The position numbers and the translations under genes are program-made. Shown piece by piece: positions 1 through 30,061 of a DNA stretch of 30,061 nt (position 1 is the first letter of the stretch; each line of letters starts with the position of its first letter). Below the pieces are notes generated by a model that had not been told where the DNA came from, did no database searches, and worked only from the letters and a program-made list of their open reading frames with translations. Location: positions 1-30,061 of the IMG/VR virus record IMGVR_UViG_3300014914_000026. One strand, given 5' to 3'.

Positions 1-123
1 AGCGGATCAGAATGCCTCAAAATACTCGGAGCCATAGACAGAATACTAAGCCTTTTTCCCACAAAGCCATAAGCACCCAACACCAAAAGGCTTAAATACA
101 CCAAACAACACAAAATTTTTTCG
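1..123. repeat. Left inverted terminal repeat (123 bp)
   Basis: Bases 1-123 are the exact reverse complement of 29939-30061; identity ends after ...caaaattttttcg. Confidence 0.97.
83..102 (+). promoter_or_regulatory. Archaeal BRE/TATA promoter inside the left ITR
   Basis: ccaaaaggCTTAAATAcacc with TATA at 92-98, about 37 nt before the ATG at 135; near-identical copy at 18493-18512. Confidence 0.7.
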
Positions 124-3619: not shown

Positions 3620-4327
3620 TTACATGCTTGTATAGTAGATTATATATACAGCTCCATCTCCTCCTTTCCCTCCATCACCACCACCTGCGTATAGGCTACC
3701 TCCTCCACCTCCACCTCCTGCTCCTGGAGATGAACCAGGTTCTCCTGATTCGCCTTTATCTCCTGTAACAGTCGATCCTCCATCTCCTCCAGATGCTATA
3801 TTGTTGGGTGTGTCAGCTCCTTTTCCTCCCTTGGTGTTCCCTGTTTCTCCTGAACTTCCAGATAGCATCGATATTTCTGAGTTTATAGCATATCCTGAAG
3901 GTGATCCTCCACCACCACCTGCTCCTGCTCCACCACTATTTGCTTTACCTCCTCCACCTCCTGAGCCTCCTCCTGCTGTAAGCCCAAAAGCAGTTGTATC
4001 TCCCCCTGCTGAACCTGGAGAGCCATTTTCATCTACAGCTCCTCCACTTCCTCCACTACCTCCTGCTCCTACTGTTATTGAATATGAAGAACCTGGAGTT
4101 ACTGGAATTCCTCTCGCTATTATAACCGCTCCTGAACCTCCTCCTCCACCACTACTTCCCGCAGATGAAGAACCTCCTCCACCTCCACCTCCTCCACCGC
4201 CTCCTCCAACTATTATTACATCGATTACATGAACGTCTTGTGGTGCTACCCATGTGTATGTTCCAGGTGTTGTAAAGGCATCTACCTTCTTTTTTATTGT
4301 AAACTTGATTGGATGTATTAGGCTCAT
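3620..4327 (-). CDS. Glycine-rich virion/tail-fibre-type protein
   Basis: FTTPGTYTWVAP...VIIVGGGGGGG...VTPGSSYSITVGAGG...GGDGAVYI matches the glycine-rich domain of phage tail proteins. Confidence 0.8.
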   Translation of the reverse strand: MSLIHPIKFTIKKKVDAFTTPGTYTWVAPQDVHVIDVIIVGGGGGGGGGGGGSSSAGSSGGGGGSGAVIIARGIPVTPGSSYSITVGAGGSGGSGGAVDENGSPGSAGGDTTAFGLTAGGGSGGGGGKANSGGAGAGGGGGSPSGYAINSEISMLSGSSGETGNTKGGKGADTPNNIASGGDGGSTVTGDKGESGEPGSSPGAGGGGGGGSLYAGGGDGGKGGDGAVYIIYYTSM

Positions 4328-5367: not shown

Positions 5368-8300
5368 GTGGGTTGGCTTAGTGGATGGCAATATAGAAAA
5401 AGCCATGAAATAGAAGGCTCTACTGCTGGTGCGGTTACAGATTATCAGATAGGTATTAAAGTTTATAGAAGCACAGGGACAGATGGAACTGAAACAGAGA
5501 GTCTAATAACATGGGGTGTTGTATATGTTGGAACTAAATGTAGAGAAGATTTTGGAGACATAAGATTCACAGCAGATGATGGTGAAACCCTCTTAGACTA
5601 TTACATGGAGGAATATGAGTATGGTTCTTGGGCTAAATTCTGGGTGAAGATACCTTCTATACCTGCTAGTCCTGACTCTGTTACTATATATGTTTATTAT
5701 GGAAACTCTGATGCGACATATTCAGGAAGTGGAGAAGATACTTTCCAATTCTATGAAGATTTTGAAGATGGAACTTTGGGTTCTACACCTCCAGGCTGGA
5801 CTGTAGAAGGAAGTAGTGGAGACTATTTCCATGTGGATGACACTCATGTAAAGCAGGGTAGCAAAAGCGGTAAGTTACATGAAGATGGTGATGGAGAAGA
5901 ACTATCAGTTAAAGCTCATAAACATGAGACATCTACTGGTGGAGGAGCGGTTGTCCATGCCTGGATGATATTCAGCGGAGATAGGTCTGCCATAGCAGGA
6001 CTGGAACCTGGAGGATCAACCTCAGATTACTATGCCTCATACCTCCTATGTAGAGATGACAAAGACGACTGGAGACGTAACTCTGGTGGAACATTTTACA
6101 CGATTACAGAGTTCTCGGCTCCTTCAGACTTGGTGTGGTATAGACTGGAGATTTATCATCGCCCATCAGATGGTAAAGTTAAATATGTAAAGGATAGAAC
6201 CGAGGAATCAGATTGGGTTGATCCAAGAAGCTCTTGGAGTGAGATAGATGGAGTCCTTTTAAAAAGCCACTATAGGTATCCTGCTGACTCATGGTGGGAT
6301 CAAATCTATATTAGAAAGTATATAGACCCTGAGCCTAGTCATGGTTCCTGGGGAAGTGAGGAAACCTCTGGAGTATCTTATGTTCAGGAAATAACTGATG
6401 TAGGAAAAGTAGGAGATGCGTTATCAAGGGGAATAATTGATGTGGAAAAAGATTCGGGAAAGAGTGTAGATAGCTTAGTTCGTATTGTTGCTTTTCATAA
6501 AAGTGTTGTTGATATTGGTAAAGGTGTTGATAGTTTGAGTAAGTTTGTGGAATATTATAGAAGTTATATGGATGTGGGGAAAGGTTTAGATTCACTTAGT
6601 CTTACTGTTAATTATGTTAGGAGTTTTATTGATGTGAGTAAAGGATTAGATTACATTAGTATGTTTAGAGAAGTGTATAGAGATGTTATGGATAGAGTTT
6701 ATGGTGAGTTTTGGTTATCGACTTTTAGAGGAAAATCATTTTATGAAACTGTGAAAAGTGTTGATTTCATATCTAAGGATTATGATGGAAGACTAAGAGA
6801 TTCTGTTTTAGGTATAGATACTATTGGAAGAGATTTTGAGAAAGTCTATATTGATTATGGAATGGTCGCTGATTTTATCTCTAAAAGACCTCTTAAAAGT
6901 TTGGTTGATAGCTCTTTAGCTGTTGATTATTTTGAGAAGGTTGTAGAGTTTGTTAGAACGCTTTTTGATACTGGGGTTTCATCAGATTATCTTAAGAAGG
7001 AAATTGGAAAGTTAGCTAAAGATGTTGGAAAGACTGTTGATTATGTGGAGAAAACTCCAGCTAAGGTGTTAGTTGATACAAGTAGGATAATTGATTGGTA
7101 TAGTAAGTTTGCCTCTAAAATATTTTTCGATACATTTATTTCATTAGATTATCTTAGGAAAACTCCTGCTAAAAAGGTTGTTGATGTTGGGAAGGTTTCA
7201 GATTGGTATTGTAAGCTGGTTTCAGAATCCTTAATTGACACTTGTAAAGGTGTTGATTGGTATAGTAAAACTTCAACATTCTACAGAAGCTTTACAGATA
7301 TAGGCAAAACTGTAGATTACATAGAAAAAATGTCCATGAAGGCTCTCCTTGATATTGTTAAAAACATTGATTGGTTTACTAAGACTGCTATATTCTACAG
7401 GAACTTGTATGAGTTTGTAAATACCTCTGATTATTTAGCTAAAGATGTGCTTAGAAGTTTCCTTGATTATGCTGTTGGTGAGTTTTTGATTTCAAGTCTT
7501 CGTGGTAAGACCTTCAGGGAGACAATTAGAACTTTTGATTATCTATATAGAAACATTCTAAAAGTTTATGTTGATATTGGTAGAGCTTCTGATTACTTGA
7601 GAAAAGATAGAACCAAACCCATAAGTGATGTCTTTAAGGTTTTGGATTATGTTAAAAAGGAATCATTAAAATGTTTTGTTGATATAGGGAGGTCAGTTGA
7701 TTTCTTGTATAAAGAGTTCTTGAAAAGGACTTTTGATTCTGTGAGCGTTACTGATTGGTTTTTAAAGTTTGCTGTGAAGTTGTTTAGGGATGTTGTTTTA
7801 GGAAGGGATTGGTCTCTTAGAGATTCGCTTAAAGTCTTGTTGGAATTATGTAAAGGTTTAGACTATTTGAGTAGAGACACCACTAAGAGCTATTTGGATT
7901 ATAGTATATGTTCAGATTTTGTTTTGTTAGATATTGTGAAGTCCTTAGTTGAAGTTAGTAGAAGCTTTGACTATACCAGTAAAAGTATTCTTAGGAATTT
8001 CATTGATTATGCTTATGGTGAGCATTTCTTATCGACATTAAAGGGAAAGGAACTTAAAGATTATGTGAAAGTTTTTGATATTCTAAGTAGGGATTACTTG
8101 AAACTATTTTTTGACTTAATGAAGGGTGTTGATTTTATATATAAAGATTATGGCAAGAGGTTTGAGGAGTCCATTATAGGTGTAGATTTTGTTGAGAAAG
8201 GTTTTGGAATAAGACTTGAAGAGACAACAAAAGTGTATGAAAAAATTAATAGAGATATTTTGAAGAGCCTAATAGATTTGGGTAGGTCTCTTGAGCTATT

Positions 8301-8952
8301 TTACAAGGATGTGATTAAGAGTGTAATTGAGTATGTTAGTATATCAGATTACCTTAGTAAGGGTATTTCTAGAATTTTTGAGTTTGAAGCTCCTGTAGTT
8401 GGATATGTCTATCATATAAGAGGTAAGGGTTTCTATGAGACTGTAGGTGTTTCGGATAGAAGTATGATAGATGTAAACAAAAGATTTGTGGAATCTTTGA
8501 AACTTATTGAGAAAATGGCTAAGGATTATTCAACTTTGATAGATTTGGAAGTTTTGGGGAAAGGATTTACATCTAAGGATGTTACAAGTTCAATTATTGA
8601 GTTTGGAAGGGTATTAGAGCCTATTTTTAGTAGAGATATTTTAAGAGCTTTTAAGGAGTGGATTATTGTAAGAGATAAATACTGGAGAAAGATCATTGTT
8701 ACACTTGTAGATTATATACTGGATACTGGTGGAGTGGCAAGAGGTGTATCGAGACCTCTTAGGGATAAGGGTAAGGGAGTAGATGTTTTGACTAAAGTGG
8801 CTTATACGCTTGCTGGTCAAGATGTTAGAAGAGTTTACTGGCATAAGGTTTGGGGGGATATTATAGAGCCATCTGACCATAACTTAAATATAGAGGCTTG
8901 TAAAGTTATTCTTGAGGCGATGAAAAGAGTTAAAGATAAGTTGGGTGAATAG
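5368..8952 (+). CDS. Large adhesin/fibre protein: N-terminal DUF2341, lectin-like beta domain, long 18-20-aa repeat stalk
   Basis: WLSGWQYRK...DFGDIRFT..DG.TLLDY..E...FWVKIPSIPA...IYVYYGN is the DUF2341 pattern; aa ~335-1150 are D-x-G-K-x-x-D-(Y/W/F)-x-x-K repeats. Confidence 0.75.
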   Translation: MGWLSGWQYRKSHEIEGSTAGAVTDYQIGIKVYRSTGTDGTETESLITWGVVYVGTKCREDFGDIRFTADDGETLLDYYMEEYEYGSWAKFWVKIPSIPASPDSVTIYVYYGNSDATYSGSGEDTFQFYEDFEDGTLGSTPPGWTVEGSSGDYFHVDDTHVKQGSKSGKLHEDGDGEELSVKAHKHETSTGGGAVVHAWMIFSGDRSAIAGLEPGGSTSDYYASYLLCRDDKDDWRRNSGGTFYTITEFSAPSDLVWYRLEIYHRPSDGKVKYVKDRTEESDWVDPRSSWSEIDGVLLKSHYRYPADSWWDQIYIRKYIDPEPSHGSWGSEETSGVSYVQEITDVGKVGDALSRGIIDVEKDSGKSVDSLVRIVAFHKSVVDIGKGVDSLSKFVEYYRSYMDVGKGLDSLSLTVNYVRSFIDVSKGLDYISMFREVYRDVMDRVYGEFWLSTFRGKSFYETVKSVDFISKDYDGRLRDSVLGIDTIGRDFEKVYIDYGMVADFISKRPLKSLVDSSLAVDYFEKVVEFVRTLFDTGVSSDYLKKEIGKLAKDVGKTVDYVEKTPAKVLVDTSRIIDWYSKFASKIFFDTFISLDYLRKTPAKKVVDVGKVSDWYCKLVSESLIDTCKGVDWYSKTSTFYRSFTDIGKTVDYIEKMSMKALLDIVKNIDWFTKTAIFYRNLYEFVNTSDYLAKDVLRSFLDYAVGEFLISSLRGKTFRETIRTFDYLYRNILKVYVDIGRASDYLRKDRTKPISDVFKVLDYVKKESLKCFVDIGRSVDFLYKEFLKRTFDSVSVTDWFLKFAVKLFRDVVLGRDWSLRDSLKVLLELCKGLDYLSRDTTKSYLDYSICSDFVLLDIVKSLVEVSRSFDYTSKSILRNFIDYAYGEHFLSTLKGKELKDYVKVFDILSRDYLKLFFDLMKGVDFIYKDYGKRFEESIIGVDFVEKGFGIRLEETTKVYEKINRDILKSLIDLGRSLELFYKDVIKSVIEYVSISDYLSKGISRIFEFEAPVVGYVYHIRGKGFYETVGVSDRSMIDVNKRFVESLKLIEKMAKDYSTLIDLEVLGKGFTSKDVTSSIIEFGRVLEPIFSRDILRAFKEWIIVRDKYWRKIIVTLVDYILDTGGVARGVSRPLRDKGKGVDVLTKVAYTLAGQDVRRVYWHKVWGDIIEPSDHNLNIEACKVILEAMKRVKDKLGE

Positions 8953-17388: not shown

Positions 17389-18435
17389 TTAATCTCTCCA
17401 GAATTTAAGGAATTGGAGGTATATTTTCTTTACGTCGAAGCTTTCAGCATGTTTTATAAGTTCTTTTTTTCTGGCTTCGTATTCTTGTCTGTTTTTGGTG
17501 TATAATTCGTAGGCATTTAAAATTTGATCAGCCATTTCTTTTGGATTGTATTCGTGAATGAGGTATAGTATTCCATCTCCAAGGTCTTTATATTGTTCAT
17601 CTTGGATTGATACTGGATAGTTTAGTTTGGGGTGAGCTATCTCTGTTAGGGGTTCATATTTTGGGTATATTACTGGAATTCCGAAGGCTTGGGCTTCAAG
17701 GACTGGTAAGCCAAATCCCTCGCATAGACTGGGCTGGATATAGAAGTCTAATGCTCCTATAAGTGAGAGTATTTCTTCTCTTGCCAGTTTTCCGAATCTT
17801 GTTAGAATTAGGGTGTTTTCAACATCAAAGAAGGCGTTTTTACCTGTTGCGTTTGTGAAGATGACGAATCCTATGTCTTTAGTTTTGCTATTAACTATTT
17901 CTATTGCCTGTGAAAGTCTATCAAGCCCTTTTCTTGGATGACCTGATGCTACTGTTCCGAATATCACTTTTTTATTGAGTTTATCTTTAATCATTTGTTT
18001 TTGGTCTGGTATTAGCTTCTTTGAGAATTCTATCATATCCATGTTTACTCCATGTGGAACCATGCCTATTACTTTTAGTCCTACTCTCTTAAGCATTTTT
18101 GTTGTGAATTTACTATTGGATATGAAGTAGCATCCTTGTTTTATCCATTTTGAGATTAGATGTTGTTTGGGTTCTCCCTCTACAGTTGTGTATATTAGTG
18201 TTGGTATGTTTAGGAGGTTGTATTCTCTTGCGAGTAGGAACCAGCTATGTGCGTATAATGGGTCGCATGTTATGAATATTATTGCTCTTTGAAATAGGTT
18301 TGGTGCTTCATGTTCTGATACCATGTAGTCTTTGAAGTATATTTTGAGTCCTGCTTTTTTAAATGCGTATGCTATATCTTGACCTACTGTTTTTAGAGAT
18401 GGGGCATAACTTGTTATAATTCCATAGCGAGTCAT
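17389..18435 (-). CDS. GT4 glycosyltransferase
   Basis: NSKFT, VPHGVN, RKGLD, PSLCEGFGLPVLEAQAFGIPVI (E-x7-E). Confidence 0.93.
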   Translation of the reverse strand: MTRYGIITSYAPSLKTVGQDIAYAFKKAGLKIYFKDYMVSEHEAPNLFQRAIIFITCDPLYAHSWFLLAREYNLLNIPTLIYTTVEGEPKQHLISKWIKQGCYFISNSKFTTKMLKRVGLKVIGMVPHGVNMDMIEFSKKLIPDQKQMIKDKLNKKVIFGTVASGHPRKGLDRLSQAIEIVNSKTKDIGFVIFTNATGKNAFFDVENTLILTRFGKLAREEILSLIGALDFYIQPSLCEGFGLPVLEAQAFGIPVIYPKYEPLTEIAHPKLNYPVSIQDEQYKDLGDGILYLIHEYNPKEMADQILNAYELYTKNRQEYEARKKELIKHAESFDVKKIYLQFLKFWRD

Positions 18436-18492
18436 GGCTATATGGAGTTAGGGTAATAAGGAAATTTAAGGGTTTCAGGTTGGAGGACTAGT

Positions 18493-18512
18493 CCAAAAGG
18501 CTTATATAGACC
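18493..18512 (+). promoter_or_regulatory. BRE/TATA promoter of the TopoVIA-like gene
   Basis: ccaaaaggcttatatagacc, 18/20 identical to the ITR promoter; preceded by the palindrome GGACTAGTCC. Confidence 0.7.
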
Positions 18513-18543
18513 TTTGTGTATTGTTATAGATGGAGGTGGATGG

Positions 18544-19536
18544 ATGAGGGGGAATAGGGAAGCTATCCTAACGGAGGTCGATAATGCTATAAGGCTCTTT
18601 GGTGCTCAGGGTGTAAAGCCTACATTGAGAACTTTGTTCTACTATCTGGTTAGCAAGAATATCATACCTAACACCAGATCAGCATATAAGAGGCTGTCAA
18701 GGATTCTGGTTAAGGCGAGAAAGGAGGGGAGATATGCCTGGGATTTCCTTGAGGATAAGACAAGGGTGGTTCTCGGATACCGATCAGACCATAGATTTAG
18801 CGATGATGTCTTAGAAGACTTTGAGGAGAGATTAAAGTATAAGCTTGAGAGCATAGACATAAGTGAGATACTTAGTGAGCTATTTGACTGGATGATGCCT
18901 ACAATAGATGTTGAAATGTGGGCGGAGCAACCTATTATACCAGAGATATGGATAGAGAAGGAGGCTTTGTCTTCGACGATATATAATTGGACAAGAGACT
19001 TGAAGGTGAGAATAAGAGTCAATCGTGGTTACAGTAGTTGGACATTCATATACAACAATGTTGAAGACTTGAAGACTACACTATTGAGGCATGACAAGGT
19101 GGTTATACTATATCTTGGAGACTTAGACCCAAGCGGAGTGGATATTCAGAGATTTCTTGAGGAAGCCTTAGAATACTTTGGACTTGACAGAGAGAAGGTT
19201 GAGTTAAGGAGGGTTGCTGTTACACCAGAGCAAGTTGAGGAGTTTGATCTACCTCCAAGACCAGAGGATGCGGAGACTTTAGCTAAGTTACAGAGAGATA
19301 CAAGAAGTAAGAGCTATACTTATGACTATATAGTAGAGCTTGATAGCTTAGTTGCCTATGTTCCAGAGGAGTTTAGAAACATAGTTAGAAGTGCTATCTA
19401 TGACTGCTGGGATAAAGATATATACAACAAACTTAAAGACAGAGCTAAGGAGCTAAGCAATAAAGCTTTCAAGCTTTTAGTAGATTATAAGGAGAAGGCG
19501 AGAGAAAAGATATTGAATATGTTAAGAGAGGAGTGA
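18544..19536 (+). CDS. Stand-alone Spo11/TopoVI-A-like protein (5Y-CAP + TOPRIM; Mini-A-like)
   Basis: TLRTLFYYL (candidate catalytic Tyr), EIWIEK, RGYSS, YLGDLDPSGVDI (DxD), ELDSL; start reassigned to MRGNRE after a GGAGGTGG RBS. Confidence 0.8.
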   Translation: MRGNREAILTEVDNAIRLFGAQGVKPTLRTLFYYLVSKNIIPNTRSAYKRLSRILVKARKEGRYAWDFLEDKTRVVLGYRSDHRFSDDVLEDFEERLKYKLESIDISEILSELFDWMMPTIDVEMWAEQPIIPEIWIEKEALSSTIYNWTRDLKVRIRVNRGYSSWTFIYNNVEDLKTTLLRHDKVVILYLGDLDPSGVDIQRFLEEALEYFGLDREKVELRRVAVTPEQVEEFDLPPRPEDAETLAKLQRDTRSKSYTYDYIVELDSLVAYVPEEFRNIVRSAIYDCWDKDIYNKLKDRAKELSNKAFKLLVDYKEKAREKILNMLREE

Positions 19537-19547
19537 AAAACCAATTA

Positions 19548-19565
19548 TTTTTTTATATAAAAAAA
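19548..19565. terminator. Bidirectional oligo-T terminator
   Basis: TTTTTTT-ATAT-AAAAAAA perfect palindrome between two convergent genes. Confidence 0.7.
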
Positions 19566-19587
19566 CTGGGTTCTCTAAGGGTTTTTC

Positions 19588-19612
19588 TATGTGGAAGAGG
19601 TATCAGGCAAAG
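19588..19612. repeat. 25-bp inverted-repeat arm in the capsid 3'UTR (partner at 19942-19966)
   Basis: tatgtggaagaggtatcaggcaaag versus reverse complement of ctttgcctgatacttcttccacata: 24/25. Confidence 0.92.
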
Positions 19613-19617
19613 GATGT

Positions 19618-19992
19618 TTAGTATGGCATCACCCAGCCTGCGATGACCTGTATAATCTCATCGCAGACTGAGGGATCGAGGCCATAGGCGTTCACATAGT
19701 AGCTCTTGAGACCAGAGCTGATCTTCTTGCCAGCATCACCCTTCTGGCGGACTATATGCCTCAGAAGGGCGAGGCCGAAGGCGAGGTAGGTCGCCCTCAT
19801 ACCACCAGTAATGCCATACTCATCGAGGATCGGCCTCACCAAGTCCCTGGCGGTGGCAACCATGTTTAGACCTTCCTGTGCTCTATCGACGGCGATGCTC
19901 TGGACATCCGTGAACCTAGTCCCTATGACGGTGGGGTTGAACTTTGCCTGATACTTCTTCCACATATCCAGACCAGTCTTATAGAGTGGCAT
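19618..19992 (-). CDS. Major capsid protein, SIRV2/Adnaviria fold
   Basis: KYQAKFNPTV...ILDEYGITGGMRATYLAFGL...GLKSYYVNAYGLDPSV..II.VI.G aligns by eye with rudivirus MCP (KWQAKF..NPTV...LTQYGITGPNRAIYQGFGL...GLKGYYISAFNANPQV); GGAGGTGA RBS. Confidence 0.92.
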   Translation of the reverse strand: MPLYKTGLDMWKKYQAKFNPTVIGTRFTDVQSIAVDRAQEGLNMVATARDLVRPILDEYGITGGMRATYLAFGLALLRHIVRQKGDAGKKISSGLKSYYVNAYGLDPSVCDEIIQVIAGWVMPY

Positions 19993-20070
19993 CTCTCATC
20001 TTCACCTCCAAATCCTATTCTGTGAAATGAAGGATGCTCTTTAAATATAAGGAATTTACTTAAAATAAAT

Positions 20071-20670
20071 TTGAGGAGTGTGATGATGAAGCCTGAGGAT
20101 GAAATGGTTAAAATGAATGAATCTTCAAATACGCTTGAAACTCCAGATAAAGTTAGATTTGACAATATTAACATTCATAGTCTTGAAGATTGGATTGATT
20201 ACAGTATAAAGTGGAGGGCTTATAGGGATGTAGTGGATTATATACAGAGAGTTCTTGAGATTACTAATAGGTATTTTGAGTGGAGGATTCGTGAGGTTAT
20301 AAAGAATGGGATTATTGTTGATTATAATAGGTATGTGAAAGTTGATAGCTATAAGGTTACTTTAACTATTGAGGTCTGTATCCATGAGGATACTGTTGAG
20401 GAGTTGGCTAAGTTCTATAAGTTCCTTAAAAGTAGGATTGAAAGTCAGAGAAGACTTAAGAGAGGTAGGCTTAGAGGCTCTGAGTTCAAGTTTGTAGCTG
20501 ATGAGGAGATAGAGTCGCCTGTGGAGAGGGCTTTGAGGGAGAGTGAAGAGGAGCTTGATAGGGTGGAGGAGGAGGCTGAGGAAAAAACAGATAAGGGAAA
20601 TTGGTATAAGTTAATCCCAGTAGGGGAGTCTCATGGAGAGGAGAGAGACGCTTCCGAGGATGATGGTTAA
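20071..20670 (+). CDS. Hypothetical protein with acidic C-terminus
   Basis: About 195-aa ORF divergent from the MCP; start probably at one of the ATGs near 20083-20104. Confidence 0.65.
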   Translation: MRSVMMKPEDEMVKMNESSNTLETPDKVRFDNINIHSLEDWIDYSIKWRAYRDVVDYIQRVLEITNRYFEWRIREVIKNGIIVDYNRYVKVDSYKVTLTIEVCIHEDTVEELAKFYKFLKSRIESQRRLKRGRLRGSEFKFVADEEIESPVERALRESEEELDRVEEEAEEKTDKGNWYKLIPVGESHGEERDASEDDG

Positions 20671-27978: not shown

Positions 27979-28080
27979 TTGACATCTGTAGTGATGAATA
28001 TAAATGTTACTCAAAGAAGGTGTCATAAGCCTTAAATACATCCTATCGGGAGAATAGAACGAATGGAGGTGTAGAGATAT

Positions 28081-29929: not shown

Positions 29930-29938
29930 GTCTATCCC

Positions 29939-30061
29939 CGAAAAAATTTTGTGTTGTTTGGTGTATTTAAGCCTTTTGGTGTTGGGTGCTTATGGCTTTG
30001 TGGGAAAAAGGCTTAGTATTCTGTCTATGGCTCCGAGTATTTTGAGGCATTCTGATCCGCT
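29939..30061. repeat. Right inverted terminal repeat (123 bp)
   Basis: Exact reverse complement of 1-123. Confidence 0.97.

Follow-up and report, generated by a model that had tools for sequence, protein, structure and literature searches.

The transcript of the major capsid protein (MCP) gene of an uncultured, rod-shaped archaeal virus carries, directly past its stop codon, a 25-nt segment complementary to the beginning of its own coding sequence (CDS). The DNA analyzed, referred to here as the window, is one whole contig of 30,061 bp with the record names IMGVR_UViG_3300014914_000026, Ga0164311_10000106 and QMZE01000005.1. The complementarity was confirmed to exist, to dominate the folds of the whole mRNA and to recur at the same CDS position in diverged lineages. 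We interpret the two arms as a selected long-range RNA helix that closes the MCP reading frame within the capsid transcript, and give this interpretation about even odds (a probability of roughly 0.5).

An earlier note, made from the letters of this DNA, had described the pair of arms, and on recomputation their coordinates (Table 1), the match at 24 of 25 positions, the 5-nt offset from the stop codon and the U7 run about 22 nt further on all held, as did the statements that both arms lie on one predicted transcript and that one of them is non-coding. The arms (19612-19588 and 19966-19942) are 329 nt apart. Their lone mismatch sets A38 of the CDS against C14 of the untranslated region (UTR), an A-C mismatch when read as mRNA and a G-T one when read on the opposite strand, and the similarity ends abruptly at both arm edges. 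That such a match lies far beyond chance was borne out: a search of the window with the 25-mer, with up to 3 mismatches allowed, returned just these two sites, and none of 100 dinucleotide shuffles of the window gave a second copy (chance expectation 0). Terminal repeats aside, the arm pair is the sole near-perfect inverted repeat of such length in the window, and a search of IMG/VR with the 25-nt arm sequence found no contig besides the window's own.

The 460-nt mRNA of the window folded in silico to -179.4 kcal/mol (z of -4.9 versus dinucleotide shuffles), with the long-range helix present in both the minimum free energy (MFE) and the centroid structures. In ViennaRNA at 37, 60, 75 and 85 °C the helix stayed in the MFE structure of the window and of five related loci (L114, L115, L116, L017 and L037), and the mean probability of its pairs over these six loci and the range 37-85 °C was 0.4-1.0 (0.77-0.93 for the window). 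The in silico part of the folding check that the earlier note had proposed was thus run with a positive outcome up to 85 °C. The predicted MCP transcript holds both arms in every helix lineage; in the window it would extend from the TATA-like box and the Shine-Dalgarno-like GGAGGUGA to the U7 run. The fold of a further relative, L021, favoured a local hairpin.

Several known structural classes were considered for the arms. A scan of positions 19300-20300 against Rfam 15 gave sub-threshold chance matches only. An archaeal bulge-helix-bulge of the rRNA/tRNA type was rejected on the grounds that the arms have one A-C mismatch and no bulges, the two 3-nt bulges and 4-bp helix of that motif being absent. 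An intrinsic-terminator hairpin was likewise rejected, given the 329-nt loop, the 22 nt between the arm and the U7 run and the lack of a T-run in L114-L116, and a terminator scan at the arm/U7 site found nothing. The reading of the mismatch (ACCUC) as an anti-Shine-Dalgarno element was dropped, as it provided a 7-bp alternative pairing only and was absent from relatives.

To characterize the pairing among relatives, the MCP gene and its downstream spacer were taken from 120 loci and each spacer was scanned against its own CDS, with G-U pairs admitted; the census set comprised 86 unique loci, and targeted retrieval added further relatives. A strict first scan returned the full 25-nt repeat in the window only. 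A significant UTR-CDS helix was found in 13 of the 86 unique loci, versus 1.2 expected, and these were divided into six at CDS 27-60, six at CDS 346-371 and one elsewhere. Exact complementary runs of at least 10 nt fell only in those two regions. The helices of L114-L116, L017 and L037, and the weaker candidate in L018, which is a possible sixth case only, are listed in Table 1, and each of them was the top-scoring helix of its own locus. Based on 1000 shuffles, the p value for an equal helix anywhere in the CDS was 0.001-0.013 (0.042 for L018), and that for a helix in the CDS 27-60 region was <=0.002. In L114 the helix is followed by CACATG as in the window, with 8 nt missing, and there is one 8-nt one-sided loop. 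The earlier note had suggested a search of related MCP loci for the same pairing and had taken absence from all of them as the sign of a one-off duplication; that search was positive, yielding 3'UTR/5'CDS helices with mirrored substitutions, and absence from all relatives was not what was found, since L114-L116, L017 and L037 carry the helix.

The second class of helix, at CDS 346-371, belongs to the L012 and L021 clades and is a local hairpin that spans the stop codon. In L012, L015, L016, L021, L024, L029, L035 and L036, UTR nt 2-26 pairs with CDS nt 346-371 in a hairpin of 14-25 bp, in which the Gly-Trp codons GGCTGG are opposite CTAGCC of the UTR and the stop codon is in the loop. In the L021/L037 clade the same UTR element has CDS 43-60 as a second possible partner, and the two helices exclude each other. 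Outside both main classes is the helix of L070, between UTR 2-22 and CDS 191-211, which was equalled in 0 of 300 shuffles. The window itself has a local imperfect 19-nt hairpin (84% complementary, 19628-19646 and 19658-19676) in the 3' end of the MCP CDS, involving the Gly-Trp codons that other clades pair with the UTR.

Evidence that the complementarity has been maintained comes from the divergence of the lineages that share it. On an MCP tree from which the arm columns were left out, the helix lineages were scattered, and only L114, L115 and L116 formed a clade. Their CDSs are 60-75% identical in nucleotides, with tree paths of ~0.6 substitutions per site, and outside the arm their spacers can hardly be aligned (z of 0.7-2.3). 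A neutral copy would be unrecognisable at such divergence of CDS and spacer, and therefore neutral retention is excluded. Within the arms, substitutions on one side are mirrored on the other: CDS position 34 forms A-U in most lineages and C-G in L017 (K12Q), position 42 forms U-A in the window and L114 and C-G in L115 and L116, position 43 forms C-G, replaced by U-A in L115 (Ser15), position 48 forms A-U in the window and G-C in L114, with U-A also observed, and positions 32-33 have G-C versus U-A in L018. In addition, when every spacer was matched against each of the 83 distinct coding arms in the family, the locus's own arm was the best partner of its UTR for the window, L017, L018 (by a wide margin) and L037 and the second best for L116; the own arm ranked within the top 5% at 12.9% of loci. 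UTR arms thus track their own coding arms while the surrounding spacer is scrambled, which indicates that complementarity is actively kept, by selection or by gene conversion. The retained sub-helices share no sequence core (L017 keeps 27-36 and L114 keeps 41-53), which fits the pairing itself being kept rather than a protein-binding motif. The fraction of identical codons at codons 9-18 was 0.61 versus 0.43 (p = 6e-4), a difference that is confounded by the two-fold-degenerate Lys/Tyr/Phe/Asp codons and by codon bias.

We propose that the first ~30 nt past the stop codon would pair with codons 9-18 and place almost the whole frame in a loop of ~330 nt, and that the helix would act as RNA. In both helix classes the 3' strand of a strong duplex begins 1-8 nt past the stop codon, and since the last-codon class pairs the same UTR position, a post-stop duplex is their common denominator. 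The most likely job of the helix would be to provide such a stable duplex, which may shield the capsid cistron while the mRNA is degraded 3'-to-5', or while a longer MCP-glycosyltransferase transcript is processed; protection against the archaeal exosome or aCPSF-type nucleases would be a plausible form of it. A barrier of this kind could enable the capsid cistron to outlive its downstream neighbours, so that capsid mRNA would accumulate far above them. With codons 9-18 as its partner strand, the duplex can form only while no ribosome is crossing them, and once formed it must affect early elongation; as such modulation of translation is possible: the helix may damp or time translation at low ribosome traffic, in cis or, via 3' fragments, in trans. 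The 3' arm itself probably originated as a template-switch inverted copy. More tentatively, and at less than even odds, we suggest that a clade of uncultured hyperthermophile rod viruses evolved and compensatorily maintains a helix that circularises the capsid mRNA; in one lineage group the UTR element, able to take either this 5' partner or the last codons, would be a two-state switch.

The self-closing transcript that the earlier note had put forward is thus supported by the in silico folds and by the pairing in relatives. Roles specific to the 5' end, namely ribosome recycling and a translational timer, are no better supported than a plain post-stop duplex, given that most relatives have no helix and that the other group pairs its last codons. 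No support was obtained for masking from CRISPR or for a packaging signal. The preference for one strand that had been read from the single mismatch found no echo in the lineages, where the counts of wobbles and mismatches give no strand signal.

A number of observations weigh against a selected RNA helix. The helix is known from sequence comparison and in silico folds, and the virus and its host are uncultured. Most relatives, L099 as the closest one (85% amino acid identity) among them, are without either helix, and scans of the cultured viruses SIRV2, SMRV1, SRV and ARV2 gave no comparable UTR-CDS complementarity; the helix is therefore dispensable. Nor are 3' stems universal in the family, an idea that was rejected because the median z was ~0 and just 12% of loci had z < -2. 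As ribosomes would melt the 5' arm on each pass, the helix could be present only on poorly translated or untranslated molecules. Across lineages the helix-flanking positions have ~5 G-U versus 4 A-C, which is no strand signal, and gene conversion between the arms would give covariation too. RNAalifold on a MAFFT alignment of six mRNAs did not recover the long-range helix; the UTR arms are at differing offsets and were misaligned, for which reason the table of pairs was fitted by hand. Finally, the L018 match shares bases with the next gene's TATA box and with TAGCGGATAAC, a motif of the UTR whose conservation does not depend on the CDS.

The main rival to an RNA helix, and a serious one, is gene conversion without an RNA role, which we consider unlikely. 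In that event an ancestral template-switch copy of codons 9-20 landed past the stop codon as a functionless inverted duplicate and was kept similar by DNA-level processes, with short-tract gene conversion or repeated template switching matching the arms and deletions slowly eroding the copy. The block is indeed sharp-edged and near-perfect in the window, the lineages keep different fragments of it (L114 has a gap of 8 nt, and L017 lacks 15 nt), its distribution is patchy, with the arm lost from most relatives, and wobble and A-C mismatches show no strand bias. Other clades have local quasi-palindromes over the stop codon, and the same mutational mechanism seems to have produced them. However, a repeat inside an essential gene risks lethal inversions and should be purged unless useful, and conversion would work poorly on the 10-13-bp arms of L017, L115 and L116, which are nonetheless perfect. 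G-U pairs within otherwise perfect helices (L114, L115 and the L037 clade) also fit conversion poorly. Moreover, the strong helices are confined to two CDS regions, with the UTR arm starting 1-8 nt past the stop codon, and this concentration argues for selection on position and not for random copying.

The remaining alternatives appear considerably weaker. It is improbable in our view that the 3' arm yields a small antisense RNA, as a stable 3' fragment of capsid mRNA that would exert negative feedback in trans at codons 9-17. The complementarity would be identical to that of a helix in cis, a 25-bp duplex just past the start would hinder early elongation, and both bacteria and archaea are known to have RNAs that originate from 3'UTRs; however, there is no mark of a processing site, no independent promoter and no Rfam match, the cis partner is always present at higher local concentration, and the last-codon pairing variant does not fit. 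Comparably small is the chance that the arms work as DNA, whether as the paired binding sites of a regulator, as a recombination or inversion site, or as a stem in single-stranded replication intermediates. Their size is about that of the sites of invertible segments, the neighbouring gene in the window encodes a topoisomerase-like DNA enzyme, and rudiviruses, to which this virus is related, replicate through single-stranded intermediates. Against this, the topoisomerase-like cassette is absent from every other helix lineage, an inversion between them would cut MCP down to a stump of 19 codons (MPLYKTGLDMWKKYQAK-DV-stop) and create no alternative product, and the lack of a common core among the sub-helices means that no fixed protein-binding site is conserved. 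An invertible segment of the Hin/Gin/Cin type was rejected for the truncation of MCP that inversion would cause and for the lack of a recombinase adjoining the arms in L114-L116 or L017. Least credible of all is a one-off accident of the window genome, such as a cassette-insertion scar, a single recent template switch or an assembly artefact. The 3' arm is just 3 nt from the flanking repeat of the cassette and the full 25-nt arm is in no other locus, but a helix at that position is found in L114-L116 and L017, which have no insertion and come from independent metagenomes. In addition, no MCP gene adjoins the homologues of the cassette gene in two other contexts, and an assembler would not be misled by a repeat of just 25 nt. 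Such an accident is, on the sequences of the relatives, already largely refuted.

Table 1. Features at the MCP locus of the window, and UTR-CDS helices in related loci (UTR and CDS positions in nt)
Feature	Position	Strand	MCP identity to window	Remarks
5' arm	19942..19966	-		CDS nt 27-51, third base of codon 9 to codon 17 (D-MWKKYQAK)
3' arm, non-coding	19588..19612	-		begins 5 nt (ACATC) past MCP stop; mRNA sense CUUUGCCUGAUACCUCUUCCACAUA
MCP gene, SIRV2-type four-helix bundle	19618..19992	-		ORF (open reading frame), 124 aa; stop TAA 19620-19618
Shine-Dalgarno-like GGAGGUGA, putative	20002..20009	-		9 nt 5' of MCP AUG; outside helix
TATA-like box CTTATATTTAAA, putative MCP promoter	20040..20051	-		~50-60 nt 5' of AUG
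U7 run, likely oligo-U terminator of MCP transcript	19559..19565	-		inside cassette; terminator function putative
Direct repeat TCTAAGGGTTT	19574..19584	+		cassette edge, 3 nt from 3' arm
Lineage-specific 1.1-kb cassette	18476..19573	+		holds promoter-like motif 18493-18512, topoisomerase-like gene, T-run terminator
Topoisomerase-like gene	18514-19536	+ (opposite MCP)		330/340 aa; PHROG 6247 'DNA topoisomerase', E 1e-49
Direct repeat TTTAAGGGTTT	18465..18475	+		other cassette edge
Glycosyltransferase gene	17389..18435	-		Pfam Glycos_transf_1; synteny; directly follows MCP in relatives
L114 helix	UTR 8-20 / CDS 41-53		81%	13/13 exact complement
L115 helix	UTR 18-30 / CDS 31-43		78%	
L116 helix	UTR 7-18 / CDS 31-42		77%	
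L017 helix	UTR 6-15 / CDS 27-36		78%	15 nt missing
L037 helix	UTR 2-19 / CDS 43-60		73%	
L018, weaker candidate	CDS 27-49			18/23 positions; possible sixth case only

The context of the 3' arm bears on how the transcript would end. In ~100 related loci the order is MCP, glycosyltransferase and a 438-aa protein, all co-directional and with 45-120 nt between the first two, and the 1.1-kb insert between the MCP and glycosyltransferase genes was found in the window only. The 11-mer TYTAAGGGTTT occurs in exactly two copies in the window, both at the cassette edges (0.1 expected), and these flanks look like a target duplication. The U7 run is half of a T7-ATATA-A7 palindrome common to MCP and the convergent gene. 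A T6-8 run is present 25-65 nt past the MCP stop codon in nearly all relatives; L114-L116 have no T-run ahead of the glycosyltransferase gene, and the same is true of an "empty-site" version of the window spacer in which the cassette flanks were joined. Since the U7 run lies inside the window-only cassette, the putative terminator arrived with the cassette, and the lack of a T-run in L114-L116 and in the empty-site spacer makes it likely that the arm, and with it the "3'UTR" of the window and L114-L116, is the intercistronic spacer of a longer transcript. The terminator context in which the earlier note had placed the arm is thus not a shared one, as the U7 run belongs to the window-only cassette and the helix-sharing L114-L116 are without a T-run.

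Homologues of the cassette gene, of which there are more than 460, occupy unrelated mobile-element contexts. One of them has a Pfam match to the TopoVI-A/Spo11 Toprim domain and another is named RNase M5. A profile search with the cassette protein against PDB sequences and Pfam gave no significant match, and only PHROG 6247 was matched; by eye comparison only, its RTLFYY and DLDPSG motifs resemble Topo VI-A "mini-A". The plus strand of the 3' arm can be read as an in-frame mini-ORF, MWKRYQAKDV, and the possibility that it was a donor remnant, brought in with the cassette from a virus in which the cassette gene adjoins an MCP gene, was considered and rejected, in that two contexts of cassette homologues are without MCP and cassette-free relatives have the arm. 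A 20-nt motif, CCAAAAGGCTTA(A/T)ATA(C/G)ACC, that includes a TATA-like box is present at 83-102, 18493-18512 and 28023-28042 and inverted at 29960-29979, with one copy per terminal repeat and one directly 5' of the cassette gene, and is probably a shared promoter type. In relatives the MCP-glycosyltransferase spacer usually has a TTTAAA-type box ~27 nt before the glycosyltransferase ATG, with a T-run in between; as such, the promoter of the next gene appears to overlap the MCP 3'UTR, and the glycosyltransferase mRNA may be leaderless. The MCP 3' spacer is also a hot spot of insertion, with 0.3-2.3 kb extra in L020, L026, L028, L029, L035, L049, L058 and L061.

On the evidence of its sequence, the virus is an unclassified, rod-shaped and uncultured member of the order Ligamenvirales. 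Its MCP matches Pfam PF12193 Sulf_coat_C, the coat family of SIRV2 and the rudiviruses, with an E value of 2.4e-21 and above the gathering score, and tblastn matches were to rudivirus coat proteins only, with 35-40% identity to those of cultured rudiviruses of the Sulfolobales. More than 250 homologues of exactly 124 amino acids were identified in hydrothermal and hot-spring metagenomes. Inverted terminal repeats of 126 nt, 99% complementary, are present at 1-126 and 29936-30061, so the contig is probably a complete linear genome. QMZE01000005.1 was binned into an "Archaeoglobales" metagenome-assembled genome (MAG) from Guaymas Basin. However, that QMZE01 MAG (L089, L090, L092 and L098) groups three different rod-virus contigs, of 30.1, 16.3 and 21.8 kb, which makes the bin an unreliable host assignment, and homologous MCPs have been binned elsewhere with Desulfurococcales, Bathyarchaeia, Thermoprotei and Aenigmarchaeota MAGs. 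The G+C content of the MCP gene is ~0.48-0.49 versus 0.34-0.42 in its neighbourhood (400-nt windows, 19500-20100), a difference that may stem from the codon bias of a highly expressed gene or from a foreign origin. Four more distant loci (L005, L007, L008 and L098) have a second, divergent MCP paralogue upstream on the opposite strand (25-31% identity), which recalls the two capsid proteins of lipothrixviruses, and L058 has a partial MCP paralogue downstream. Elsewhere in the window, the ORF at 3620-4327 (-) contains CCTCC-type repeats that are glycine-rich on the coding strand, and the ORF at 5368-8952 (+), of 1194 aa, contains several families of degenerate internal repeats of ~40-60 nt.

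To our knowledge, almost nothing is known of post-transcriptional control in archaeal viruses, and little of mRNA 3' ends and decay in hyperthermophilic archaea. The element is short and sharply bounded, lies in the gene of highest expression and has natural compensatory variants, and so provides a directly testable case. If a compensatorily maintained helix does circularise the capsid mRNA, it would be the first known cis-acting long-range RNA structure that controls a gene of an archaeal virus, and a prokaryotic closed-loop mRNA made of pure RNA-RNA pairing that couples the stability and translation of capsid mRNA to ribosome traffic. If the pairing matters, prokaryotic mRNAs can close end-to-start by RNA pairing alone, with the CDS as one partner, and a simple handle would be available for tuning expression in thermophile vectors. 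If it is irrelevant, these loci show a 10-25-bp inverted repeat evolving in concert within an essential viral gene, and would be instructive on recombination in such genomes.

Long-range pairing between the 5' and 3' parts of an mRNA is already known, and it is the setting here for which the literature searched, on 3'UTR and terminator features of rudivirus capsid genes and on related Ligamenvirales viruses, describes no equivalent. The virus resembles SIRV2-type Ligamenvirales (Rudiviridae) in the PF12193 capsid fold, the linear double-stranded DNA genome with inverted terminal repeats and the conserved glycosyltransferase adjoining the capsid gene, and it differs from the cultured rudiviruses in an MCP identity of just 35-40% and in having the UTR-CDS complementarity that is lacking from SIRV2, SMRV1, SRV and ARV2. 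In hok mRNA, the tac/fbi stem is a long-distance helix of the 5' part with the 3' end that closes and stabilises the full-length mRNA, and this paired form is believed to restrict translation as long as the 3' end is untrimmed (PMC9841398). The predicted helix of the window likewise joins the 5' part and the 3' end of one mRNA. However, the 5' partner of hok is in the 5'UTR whereas that of the window is codons 9-17, and the closed form of hok hides the Shine-Dalgarno sequence via a second box, whereas GGAGGUGA and the AUG of the window are outside the helix (+27 to +51). Slow trimming that takes away the 3' arm and leads to refolding, and an antisense RNA partner, are further marks of the hok type; no toxin or antisense RNA gene is evident at the window locus, and the host is archaeal.

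A further parallel is the cyclisation of flavivirus genomes, in which a 5' cyclisation sequence (5'CS) inside the capsid coding region pairs with the 3'CS in the 3'UTR. In both cases the 5' partner is a few codons into the capsid frame, the 3' partner is in the 3'UTR and the complementarity covaries. The flavivirus pairing, however, belongs to an RNA genome and serves replication by the viral polymerase; since the molecule of the window is the mRNA of a double-stranded DNA virus, any role would concern the fate of the mRNA only. An archaeal precedent for a joint action of both mRNA ends is provided by haloarchaea, in which 5' and 3' UTRs cooperate in translation control (Brenneis and Soppa 2009, PMC2636863). 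There, both ends are required together for translational regulation, but no end-to-end base pairing was demonstrated, the genes are cellular and the 5' element is a stem-loop of the UTR. Finally, stems of the bacterial repetitive extragenic palindromic (REP) and puf types, in 3' or intercistronic positions of polycistronic mRNAs, block 3'-to-5' exonucleases. Known stems of this kind are local hairpins, and a partner 330 nt upstream in the reading frame is not usual for them. They resemble the helix proposed here in placing a duplex directly past an abundant cistron, and a role of that type would explain both helix classes as well as the helix-bearing relatives that have no terminator before the next gene.

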